A stretch of 64,000 bases of DNA from Calcarisporiella thermophila CBS 279.70 (taxonomy: Eukaryota; Fungi; Calcarisporiellomycota). A program made the position numbers and the translations under genes. Each line of letters begins with the position of its first letter. The stretch's first letter is position 1. The stretch lies in the NCBI RefSeq assembly GCF_041956535.1, contig NW_027192201.1:359202-423201 (forward strand), given 5' to 3'. This document shows, piece by piece, positions 57,194 through 60,837 of this stretch. Below the pieces are notes generated by a model. That model saw only the letters and a list, made by a program, of their open reading frames with translations, did no database searches and was not told where the DNA came from.

Positions 57194-60100
57194 ATGTCGT
57201 TACCTTTTGATCAAAGTAAAGATTTGTTTCCTATAGGAGATGTAGATCAGAAAATGATTCCCAAACGAAATAAACCTTTGTCGCTTTCTCTGAGGAAAAA
57301 GAGCTTGGAAATCAGACCCTCTAATACTTTAGAGGTAATTTATATGAGACTTTTACCAACTCCTTCTGAAATAGATATCTCTATTATTACATAGTTTATT
57401 TATATTCTTCTACTTTTGTTCTGTACTTATTCCCTTGTAGAATCTATGGAAACGTGACCGAGAAAATTTGCAAGATTCTTCGCCTCTCAAGCGAGCCAAA
57501 GTACTCCCAAGAATCTAGCTATATTTTCATCTAATTGTCATCCTGTAAATGTTAATACCTACTTAATTTTTCTTAGATCGGAACATCTAGTACGATGATC
57601 CCTAATGACACAATCTCATTTAAGGAGCGACTAAGTGTAGGGGAATGTCCTGTGTGCAATACAACTTTCCACAGTGTGCTCATTAGTGAACTCAATAATC
57701 ACGTGAATAATTGCTTGGGAAATGATAAACCTCAAGCAATTGTTAGTGCTACTGGCTCGTCAATAACAGGAGTTGCCAATGAAGAATCTGTTGAGGCCAT
57801 GTTAGGCAGTTTCAAGGAAAATTTCGACTCTTCGCTGGACTTTACGATGATAGAATCAGAGACAGTAAATTTTATGCTTGCAGTCTTCTTAGGGAAGCTC
57901 CTAATTCTTTTGCATACGATCTATTAGCCTGATAGAATGGATTCGGATATTGACAATCCGACGATTTGTCCAGAAACTTCACAGGAGCAAGAGCTCTCCA
58001 AATCTACTGAGTCATCTAGTTGCAAAGCCGTTCTTAAGGAAAAGCCTATAGATGACTCAGAAAACTGCCTAATTCAGCAAAAACAACTGCGAAATACCAT
58101 CATTGTTGAAGATGATCAGATCAATTTCGTCGCTTCGACTAGTGAGAAAGAAAATCAATTTCCGCAGGTTCCGTCCCTCTCCACAAAGAAAAAGCCGCCA
58201 GTCAAAGGTGGTGAGGACATGTTCACACGGGATCAAGTAAAAGATTGGTCTCCGGCGCGTATCAAAGCCTGGGAGGCTCGATATTCAAATGCAGAAATGT
58301 TTTACTACCGGTTTGTCGGTAAGCCGTCGATTTTTTTTTTTTTGATGTTATAAATGGCTTGAGATTTTCTTCTGTCTTTAGATCCCGGTGAATATCAGAT
58401 CAACGGCAGTTTTACCAAGAAAGACCACGATGCATTCATGAAGAGATTAGAGGAATGGAAAGAGAAGGGCTATAGAATTGGATCTTCATGGGGAATCTTC
58501 AGCATGGGAGTCCCTCACAGAGTATTTATAATATTGAATATTCTAAGTATCAATCCAGATGGTCATAGTTCTCTATTAAATTTTTTCCATAGGCTGGCTA
58601 TCAATGCAGTAGCTACTACCGAAAATTGATTGAACAAGGAAAACTTAAAGATGAAAGTTATGCTATGATAGAAGGAAAGCTCCAGATGGTGAATAAGGCA
58701 CGTAACTTGGGAGGAGAGGTTGCTACCAGTAAATTAAGTGACGCTTGGCAAACGCCTGAAGTGAAGGAGATTGAGGCAAATGTGAATGAATGGTTGAAAG
58801 AGTTTCATGGTCGAAGCGGGTAAGTATCCATCTCTTATGATCTCCGAGCGTTTACAATATAACGTATTTTAATTTATACTAGCGAGAGCATCCCTCAGCG
58901 GGTTAGGAGAATTCCAGCTGCTAGAAGTACGTCAGCAAATGCGTCTCCTCGACCCATTTCACAGCGCAAGCTCGGTGGAAACTTGCGCCCTCTGATGCCT
59001 GGAGAAAATTATATTGATGATGACGACGATTCTTTCCAATCCTACAAAGAAAAATTGGAGAATCGCAAACGAAGATTCATTGCGCGGCTTGATATGTCTT
59101 CAAGATTGGAAGAGTACCGTCAATTTTTAAGGTAAAATTTGATATACTGTAGTCCCTTTTAAAGCTAATGTTTAAAATGGAATGCCATACAGTGTGAATG
59201 CGCATCTGCCTCAAGCTTGTAGACGGTTTGTACCCGTCATATGCCGCACAGGGGATTTCCGTTCCGTTTCAAAGGCTTGGGAAGTGCCTACCCCCGAGAC
59301 CTACACCTATGAGCCGAAAGAAAGATCCTTTTCCAGTATCTTCTCTCCTTTCTACAAGGTATATATATGCATTTGATTACCTGGGGATTTGTATTTACTC
59401 TCTTATGTGTCAGGTAAAACCAAAACGGATAGAGGCCCCCGATCCATTGCAAGTCATTATTCCAAAAGAACCTGCGCAGTGGGGGGTGAAGATGATTACA
59501 CCATTATCTCTTCTGAATTCCATGGGGGACAAGAATAAACTGAGTGAAAACATGTAACTATCTAACTACTAAATGTTAAACGAGTTGTTGCTCAATTTTA
59601 TGATATATAGTTATCTGGAGGTGGATGACATGCTTAGTCTGAACTTGGATACAATTTCCACTGAAGCAGGGCAGGAGCGTTTCGATTTTCAGGGTGTGCT
59701 AATCGACCCACCGTGGGATTTTTACCTTAAAGATGATCTCCATGATGGGAACTGCTATCTCACCATTCCTATGTTTGTAAGTAGTCAAGATTTGCCATTG
59801 CAATTATATTTGATGCATTTATGTTATATGCTTTGATTTTAGGCCTCTATAATTGAGAAGACGACTCAGTATATTAAAAGTGGTATATTTTTTGTGTGGA
59901 CTCATAAGCTACTACAAGATTCGGTGTTGAAGGTGATGGACTTCTATGGTAGGTTTCGTTTAGTTTTTTTGTCTTTACTCTTCCGCCAAACAGTCTGTAA
60001 CGAGATCTCGGTCTTATTATTTTAGACTGTAAATATGTGGAAAACCTCGTTTGGTATAAGAAATGCATCAACAATGCGAACCTTGACCGTGTTTCTCCGC

Positions 60101-60837
60101 ATTTCAGGGTGTCGAAAGAGATTTTACTTATGTTCAAGAAGGTAGCGTTCTACTTTTTTTTTTTACTCTTGATCATCCAAAATAAGCTGTGTGGTTTGAA
60201 ATAGGGCGACGACTTTGAAATGAGACATCAGAGAAGCGCAGATGTAATTATTGATTTTGAGACCCCTCCTGAACTCTGGTCTCAAGAAGGCAAGTATTTA
60301 ATGGCTTCTTCCTTTCTGTCAGATCATTTCATTGCATGCAATTTTTTTTACACATAGAATACACTATGCCAAAACCAGTAGAAGTATATCAAATGATTGA
60401 AACACTTCTTCCAGCTGCTTCCTACGATGCAAGTAAGGGTCGGGGGCGATTGCTTGAATTGTAATTTTTCCTACATTTTATTGTTATCATTCTGTCTTTT
60501 ACTTTAACTTACCCCTCGTATACCTTCACTTAGATGGGCAAAACGTTCTAGCCCGCGACGAAAAGGATGGATTGCGGTTCACCAACGAAAATCTCCTAGA
60601 GCTCAACTTTGTCAACCACTGGATACTGATGTGAAGGAAGAAATTGGGGAATCAGAATTTGAGGAGGAGTTACCACTTGACGTTATACCTCTAGACGATG
60701 TGCTTATAGATTTTGATGTTGCAGATCTTGCCTCAAGTCCGCCCGTTGAAAGCAAACCAGATACTCCGTGTGGAGAGCAGGAAACAATAACGCGAGATTT
60801 TATTGAAATCGAGAAGAATATGTGTGATCTCAATTAA
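57194..60837 (+). CDS. UBZ-like finger + p1-like Myb domain + MT-A70 (MTA9/AMT6-7-like) adenine methyltransferase, 15 exons
   Basis: CPVC..LNNHVNNC; FYYRFVDPGE..NGSF...WGIFSMGVPHRAGYQCSSYYR; LIDPPW (DPPW 59705-59716), FFVWTHK, YVENLVW, SKEILLMFKK, RHQRSADVI, KP..VY.MIETLLP, LLELWA. One continuous frame can be built. Confidence 0.85.

Follow-up and report, generated by a model that had tools for sequence, protein, structure and literature searches.

The gene and its MT-A70 domain

The window analysed here is the whole of a 64,000-nucleotide stretch of the genome of Calcarisporiella thermophila CBS 279.70 (contig NW_027192201.1, positions 359,202 to 423,201 of the forward strand). Its subject is an intron-rich gene at positions 57194-60837 of the plus strand, which encodes a Myb/SANT-like block and an MT-A70 methyltransferase-type domain in one polypeptide. 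Bookkeeping of splice sites and reading frame resolved 15 exons that total 2682 nt, corresponding to 893 codons and a TAA stop. The 14 introns measure 55-106 nt each, 13 of them with GT-AG borders, and the G+C content is 43% in exons and 30% in introns. A protein database search with exon 10 as the query returned, at 100% identity, a public protein of 893 amino acids (P0001), deposited as 'uncharacterized protein VTP21DRAFT_1296 [Calcarisporiella thermophila]'. This protein matches the 15-exon model residue for residue, and its junction peptides agree with the spliced model at all exon borders, so that the single frame of 15 exons proposed by eye in the initial annotation is borne out. The public model also uses the GC-AG intron 13, a hint that transcript data went into its construction. 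All full-length analyses were run on P0001. Single exons used as queries yielded nothing useful in Pfam, and exons 10 and 12 alone gave no sequence match in the PDB.

Pfam detected MT-A70 (PF05063) at residues 627-807 of P0001 with 36.9 bits, against a cut-off of 23.9. Comparison of P0001 with PDB sequences returned the ciliate proteins AMT6 (MTA9-B), MTA9 and AMT7 at E values of 1e-13 to 1e-15 and MTA1 at approximately 1e-6. With a profile of 19 family sequences the values were 5e-35 to 8e-34 for AMT6, MTA9 and AMT7, approximately 1e-18 for MTA1, 1e-7 for METTL3 and 1e-5 for METTL14. An AlphaFold model of residues 540-815 had a predicted local distance difference test score (pLDDT) of 76.8, exceeding 85 in the core and falling below 55 at its start, on the linker side. 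Foldseek searches with this model placed MTA9-B and MTA9 first (E of 5e-15 to chains of the MTA1c complex), METTL3 and METTL14 being matched as well. On these best matches of sequence and fold, together with the E-M-R-H-Q-R and IETLLP loops, the protein is a member of the AMT6/7 (MTA9) clade, the assignment originally made from its RHQR and YVENLVW features, the latter lying in exon 12. Profile searching here took the place of a tree with ciliate sequences in the comparison with AMT1, AMT6/7, METTL3 and METTL14.

The best-matching proteins, ciliate MTA9/AMT7 and MTA9-B/AMT6 (PDB 7yi8, 8xyl, 9o6k, 9u92), share with the window protein an ELRHQR-type loop, an IETLLP loop and a C-terminal LLEL...GW. 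They differ from it at motif IV, which reads NIKW in AMT6 and NALW in AMT7 and DPPW in the window protein; they possess neither a Myb domain nor a UBZ finger, and are unrelated to it in the N-terminal tail. In Tetrahymena, the ELRHQR 'Multiple Interaction Loop' of AMT6/7 and a hydrophobic (LLP) loop touch AMT1, DNA and the DNA-binding domain of AMTP1 (bioRxiv 10.1101/2025.07.08.663716). Residues R737, H738, Q739, R740, L776 and P777 of these two loops are invariant or nearly so among the orthologues of the window protein.

Distribution of the single-chain architecture

The combination of domains is shared with many other fungi. Of the orthologues with 500 or more residues, 28 have models that extend to motif IV, and every one of these shows the Myb signature, DPPW and RHQR in identical order; in the one other orthologue of that size (P0030) the Myb signature and RHQR are present and the motif IV segment is missing. 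One protein overlooked by the pattern search (P0035) was confirmed to contain the Myb block by hhalign. Sources of the Myb-bearing orthologues are Mucorales (Rhizopus stolonifer among many), Umbelopsidales, Mortierellomycotina, Endogone, Bifiguratus and Dimargaritales; their models were produced by several annotation pipelines. In a quick maximum-likelihood tree, from which the short MTA9 paralogue of the same genome (known as exons) was left out, all Myb-bearing forms grouped in one cluster (Shimodaira-Hasegawa-like approximate likelihood ratio 97) and the fungal forms with DPPL at motif IV in another. Because the Myb-bearing forms cluster together, the fusion looks like one old event that took place before Mucoromycota and Dimargaritales diverged; a short lineage would stand apart from it. 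As read from the alignments, Myb block, MT-A70 domain and DPPW together are the usual, conserved layout of a single fungal AMT6/7 lineage and not a one-off fusion. The initial annotation had itself allowed that the architecture might prove to be the norm for fungal MTA9; in sequence databases it is, and the uniqueness of the gene is gone while its annotation stays.

That both domains belong to one chain is supported by several observations, the comparative ones being strong. In Dispira parvispora one unbroken open reading frame of 781 codons covers both domains, and residues 233-812 of P0001 aligned to it in a single tblastn segment. The linker exons of the window gene are in frame and free of stops. 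The orthologues are co-linear, and the basic motif of exon 1 recurs at the N-termini of several of them. Approximately 20 Mucorales models of the Joint Genome Institute (JGI; among P0039-P0061) are C-terminal fragments of this gene, of 147-226 residues. In Syncephalastrum racemosum the co-linear locus (L024; MCGN01000001.1, 3242-5631) is split among three models, with one of the cuts, a gap of 13 nt, falling inside the MT-A70 fold. If the cuts marked gene borders, none would be expected within a single fold; the Syncephalastrum splits are thus truncations, and the possibility that the short JGI models represent separate transcripts was rejected. The short Mucorales models appear to be systematically mis-annotated, which conceals the architecture.

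Two further kinds of composite model were seen during the survey. In the model from Bifiguratus adelaidae (P0034) the normal C-terminus of the MT-A70 domain is replaced by a DUF202 membrane segment; the gene model is probably chimeric. In several species of Coemansia and Dipsacomyces (P0081, P0093-P0095, P0097, P0101, P0107), AMT6/7-like sequence is joined to cytidine-deaminase domains (PF00383, PF08211); these could be real fusions or merged neighbours.

Table 1. Features of the gene (window coordinates, residues of P0001) and of related genes elsewhere in the genome (G000:contig:position)
Feature	Position	Strand	Residues	Basis or remark
Exons 1-5	57194-57334, 57441-57500, 57577-57864, 57928-58318, 58382-58521	+		Splice sites, frame
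Exons 6-10	58593-58819, 58883-59131, 59193-59358, 59414-59553, 59611-59776	+		Splice sites, frame
Exons 11-15	59843-59948, 60026-60141, 60205-60289, 60358-60460, 60534-60837	+		Splice sites, frame
Intron 13, GC-AG, donor GCAAGT	60290-60357	+		Sole non-GT donor of the gene; same junction in public model
Basic N-terminal motif KPLSLSLRKKS (exon 1)	57272-57304	+		Orthologue alignment
C2HC finger, UBZ4 type, C-x2-C-x14-H-x3-C	57646-57714	+	91-113	Pattern, PDB search
Extended Myb/SANT-like block (160 residues)	58201-58817	+	255-415	Contains introns 4 and 5
Three-helix Myb core	~58393-58652	+		Structure model
Linker	58818-59428	+	416-559	Few conserved positions, e.g. Q545; mostly low confidence
MT-A70 domain, AMT6/7 (MTA9) clade	59429-60600	+	~560-815	Pfam, PDB, Foldseek
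Motif IV, DPPW	59705-59716	+	633-636	Read from sequence; fits [DNSH]PP[YFW]
RHQR, in E-M-R-H-Q-R loop	60223-60234	+	737-740	Invariant in alignment
Acidic C-terminal tail	60601-60834	+	816-893	Sequence not conserved in alignment
MTA1/AMT1 orthologue (L004)	G000:C2:370048-373419			PDB match
Short MTA9-type gene (L020)	G000:C6:475890-479141, ~1077-1858 within			Near 477 kb of C6
Myb gene L012	G000:C6:302190-305285			N-terminal Myb, highly charged linker, RING/SP-RING/U-box-like C-terminus
Myb gene L013	G000:C4:127998-131102			Close paralogue of L012, same layout
Myb gene L026	G000:C31:68400-71600			Myb part without first helices

The Myb block and related genes of the genome

The Myb-like character of the N-terminal block, recognised from its letters in the initial annotation, was confirmed at the level of predicted fold. 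The block has a mean column identity of 63% across 14 aligned orthologues and was modelled by AlphaFold2 with a pLDDT of 91.3 and a predicted template modelling score of 0.84, in the order of three short helices, a three-helix core, a beta-hairpin and one long helix. With modest Z scores, the core could be superposed on Myb/SANT repeats, including SNAPC4 (Z 4.8, root mean square deviation 1.4 over 53 residues), RAD (Z 4.7), c-Myb and CoREST. The Pfam Myb family was matched in 4 of the 14 orthologues, each time below threshold, and domain drawings based on Pfam would therefore overlook the domain. Three of the orthologues bear the name 'Myb-like domain-containing protein' in UniRef.

A more specific likeness to the p1 subunit of the MTA1c complex, claimed from the same letters, could not be demonstrated. 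The ciliate proteins p1/AMTP1 and p2/AMTP2 contain a three-helix Myb/homeodomain-like module that adjoins AMT6/7 and touches the RHQR loop; in the window protein such a module is covalently attached to the MT-A70 domain. Searches of the ciliate p1, p2 and AMTP chains in the PDB with the Myb exon of L013, with P0001 and with a 14-sequence profile returned no sequence match at E values up to 10, and p1 and p2 were absent among the top 50 fold matches listed by Foldseek and by two VIA-align runs; these negatives are limited by PDB constructs that may omit or poorly represent the DNA-binding domain. Two asparagines of the recognition helix are reported to be conserved in fungal P1 by Lax et al. 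(PMC12019607). In our alignment to the Myb R3 pattern, the corresponding positions are Y343 and S347 in the window protein and Y and N in both L012 and L013. No C-terminal region of the p1 type that would bind MTA1 was identified in the window protein.

Three separate Myb genes of the same subfamily are present in the genome (L012, L013 and L026). The Myb block of the window gene is 40-56% identical to those of L012 and L013 over three exons, and hhalign related the L013 Myb domain to the Mta9 block with a probability of 99.5% (E 2.9e-23); the L013 domain also matched c-Myb at 6.7e-9 in a PDB search. L012, L013, L026, the Mta1 gene and the short MTA9 gene were analysed exon by exon. A shape search found the extended block again in an Atlas cluster composed mainly of green algae (Chlorophyta), with a template modelling score of 0.61 over 118 residues; Pfam Myb was annotated in 44% of the members of this cluster and a U-box in 33%. 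Look-alikes of the block by feature were commonest in Chlorophyta and Mucoromycota, a spread that resembles the published distribution of AMT1 and p1 (PMC12695648). Because of this resemblance, L012, L013 and L026 are reasonable candidates for fungal P1/P2. The C-terminal exons of L013, compared with the PDB for a p1-type MTA1-binding part, gave just a weak alignment to the COP1 RING, and no paper was found in the literature that joins U-box, Myb and N6-methyladenine (6mA). The Myb proteins with a RING or U-box, both L012 and L013 and those of green algae, are the closest relatives of the window protein in the extended block, to which theirs is specifically related; unlike the window protein, they lack an MT-A70 domain, and a RING/U-box-like module forms their C-terminal end.

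The search for separate components recommended in the initial annotation also recovered other MT-A70 genes in the 28-Mb genome, which thus has a complete set of them. The MTA1/AMT1 orthologue (L004) matched ciliate MTA1 chains at 2e-48, carries DPPWQLATHAPTRGV and has a C-terminal FGRKNN...GNE. A second, short gene of the MTA9 type (L020) reads DPPF at motif IV, contains DIELRHQRNPD and is without the Myb block. METTL3-, METTL14- and METTL4-like genes (L001 on C21, L002 on C10 and L003 on C8, respectively) were assigned by motifs alone. The PF05063 scan of the genome failed to recover the window gene itself and yielded one false match (L008), which was discarded as a sugar-transporter-like gene. 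Since the genome keeps a separate MTA1, a second MTA9-type gene and three Myb genes, the system is not a streamlined one; with the layout shared by all 28 of the orthologues above, a fused or streamlined writer peculiar to this fungus is not supported.

The conserved basic motif of exon 1 is probably a nuclear localisation signal; its SL..RK/KR pattern is common to the N-termini of the window protein and of orthologues from Umbelopsis, Apophysomyces and the Mortierella group. The C2HC finger reads CPVC-x14-H-x3-C followed by L, a spacing identical to that of both Pol kappa UBZs and in keeping with the UBZ-like finger described earlier. It matched no Pfam family, and its best PDB matches, the UBZ fingers of Pol kappa and RAD18, were weak (E 0.11-0.43). 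Among the orthologues the C2HC pattern occurs in Calcarisporiella and Endogone only.

Motif IV and the proposed role of the long Mta9

The initial annotation described DPPW as intact and the protein as possibly catalytically active. The first statement holds: D633-P-P-W636 is invariant in the 16 long-form fungal orthologues checked, as are E604, K722-E723 and E792. In a profile-based survey of approximately 100 AMT6/7-like proteins aligned to the family model, RHQR was found in all. At motif IV, the fungal forms with the Myb block and the protein of Planoprotostelium have DPPW, Kickxellales and chytrids have DPPL, and Ostreococcus, Paratrimastix and a large number of proteins from marine metagenomes have NPPW; the motif is degenerate in other lineages, as in ciliates (NIKW, NALW; also NPDW, NKGW). 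Across the sequences surveyed, retention of [DN]PPW is common in the clade outside the ciliates. Loss of the motif is accordingly a ciliate trait and does not define the clade, because DPPW, DPPL and NPPW occur in many lineages. The protein of the metamonad Paratrimastix pyriformis (P0036), with NPPW and RHQR and without the Myb block, lies on a very long branch of the tree.

The second statement is weakened by the region presumed to bind the cofactor. R536, H538, N539, N549 and Q550 of METTL3, which we take to be cofactor contacts from the METTL3-METTL14 structures, were equated with positions of the window protein on the same assumption. Aligned by eye over this short stretch, P0001 reads AKRSS...VHQ, against GRQHN...GNQ, GRKNN...GNE and ARNLL...GNE in the METTL3-, MTA1- and METTL4-like genes, respectively, of the same genome. 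Those three genes retain R-x-[HN]-N or R-N together with G-N-[EQ], for which the long Mta9 has K-R-S-S and V-H-Q. Positions 798-799 vary freely among the orthologues and position 809 is H or R. As the equated positions are variable or replaced, catalysis by the window protein is doubtful; a partner role appears the better description, and that of an enzyme an unlikely one.

A precedent for a motif of this kind in a protein that is not an enzyme is provided by METTL14, which keeps EPPL (xPPx) at motif IV, binds no cofactor and is inactive. As an MT-A70 protein of the partner type in which xPPx is kept beside degenerate cofactor contacts, it offers a functional analogy for the window protein. 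It differs in belonging to another MT-A70 clade (the profile E value of 1e-5 given above), in its RNA substrate and in having neither Myb nor UBZ domains, and a METTL14-like gene of the fungus itself lies on C10.

We propose, with a probability of roughly 0.6, that the window gene encodes a 'long' fungal Mta9, which would pair with the separate Mta1/AMT1 encoded on C2 to write symmetric ApT 6mA. The pairing is inferred from homology to the ciliate complex and from two-hybrid data in Rhizopus. By this proposal the MT-A70 domain would act as a structural, DNA-engaging partner of Mta1, with the RHQR and LLP loops contributing at the dimer and DNA interface. The N-terminal Myb/SANT domain, tethered by a linker of approximately 150 residues, might act in cis to close the clamp, or supply a second contact with DNA or chromatin. 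The UBZ4-type finger would be an addition confined to some lineages, through which the protein could be linked to ubiquitinated PCNA, histones or chromatin. In ciliates the contact between the Myb and MT-A70 domains forms on DNA only. The separate DNA-binding domain of AMTP1 in Tetrahymena closes the clamp by touching the RHQR loop of AMT7 (bioRxiv 10.1101/2025.07.08.663716), and the Tetrahymena AMT6 complex is described as recruited by PCNA (PMC13297926), a loose parallel to the role proposed for the finger. In Rhizopus microsporus, a two-hybrid interaction of Mta1 with Mta9 and the essentiality of the system are reported (PMC12019607).

The Mta9 of Rhizopus microsporus and Mucor studied by Lax et al. 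(PMC12019607, PMC11258239) belongs to the same clade, and to the same phylum-level lineage, as the window gene, and the duplication of Mta9 reported in Rhizopus (PMC12019607) matches the long and short pair of the present genome. In the available text of these two papers Mta9 is called 'non-active' and neither a Myb-like domain nor an intact DPPW is mentioned; their figures or supplements may draw the architecture. More generally, the published model, so far as it is set out in the accessible text of PMC12019607, PMC11258239, PMC12695648, PMC13297926, PMC7145601 and PMC4738411, presents P1 as a Myb protein of its own and Mta9 as an MT-A70 partner without activity; the text of the six papers, figures and supplements aside, is silent on any Myb domain in Mta9 and on any retention of DPPW there. 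The long-Mta9 layout is widespread and was already present, unremarked, in databases; it is not a new system.

Several observations weigh against the proposed partner role. The invariance of DPPW, E604, K722-E723 and E792 over long-separated lineages seems to be more constraint than a pure scaffold would need; ciliates lost motif IV whereas the long fungal Mta9 kept DPPW, an invariance that the partner role leaves unexplained. Both classical Myb recognition-helix asparagines are replaced in the window protein. In addition, either of the two Mta9 copies studied in Rhizopus microsporus may be of the long type.

The same invariance is the chief argument for an alternative in which the long Mta9 is itself active, giving a complex with two active sites or a self-targeting enzyme guided by its Myb domain. 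Retention of DPPW in 16 of 16 fungal orthologues, together with E604, K722, E723 and E792, suggests selection when motif IV decays freely elsewhere (NIKW, NALW, NPDW, NKGW). We nevertheless consider this alternative unlikely, given that the equivalents of METTL3 H538 and N539 are variable, that the asparagine of G-N-E/Q is H or R, and that METTL14 keeps xPPx without activity. Mta9 is also treated as inactive in the literature (PMC11258239). A more elaborate form of the idea is a little less probable still: the AMT6/7 subunit of Mucoromycota and Dimargaritales, far from being a passive scaffold, might through its invariant DPPW pocket either methylate or grip a flipped adenine or 6mA on the opposite strand, with the Myb domain replacing or duplicating P1 in a two-pocket, self-targeting maintenance writer, which in Calcarisporiella and Endogone would be coupled to ubiquitin through UBZ4.

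It is distinctly improbable that the protein acts apart from Mta1, either as a pseudo-enzyme reader that holds a flipped adenine or 6mA in the DPPW pocket or in some other complex, targeted by its Myb and UBZ domains. In its favour, the short MTA9-type gene could serve as the regular partner of Mta1, the motif of the aromatic pocket has been kept next to a cofactor region that is degenerate in part, and the finger is found both here and in Endogone; against it, the counterparts of the ciliate loops that touch AMT1 are invariant, and Mucorales, in which binding of Mta1 to Mta9 has been demonstrated, carry the long form. Hardly credible is an artefactual merging of adjacent Myb and MT-A70 genes, for which the approximately 20 short JGI models and the three-model Syncephalastrum locus might be cited, but which is contradicted by the unbroken Dispira parvispora frame, the stop-free, in-frame linker exons, the 13-nt gap that marks a truncation within the MT-A70 fold and the co-linear layout in independent annotations of many genera.

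If the long Mta9 is a plain scaffold, the outcome is a better annotation and no new mechanism. The window gene is not unique, yet the observation at the level of the family still merits the attention of specialists. Pfam-only drawings and many truncated Mucorales gene models obscure the true architecture. The protein, coming from a thermophile, may suit biochemistry and structure work. The ciliate-based model of symmetric 6mA deposition combines a single active subunit with a dead partner and with DNA-binding proteins on chains of their own; in many early-diverging fungi with abundant 6mA, which is essential in at least one species, the partner has a domain of the DNA-binding type within its own chain and has never lost DPPW.

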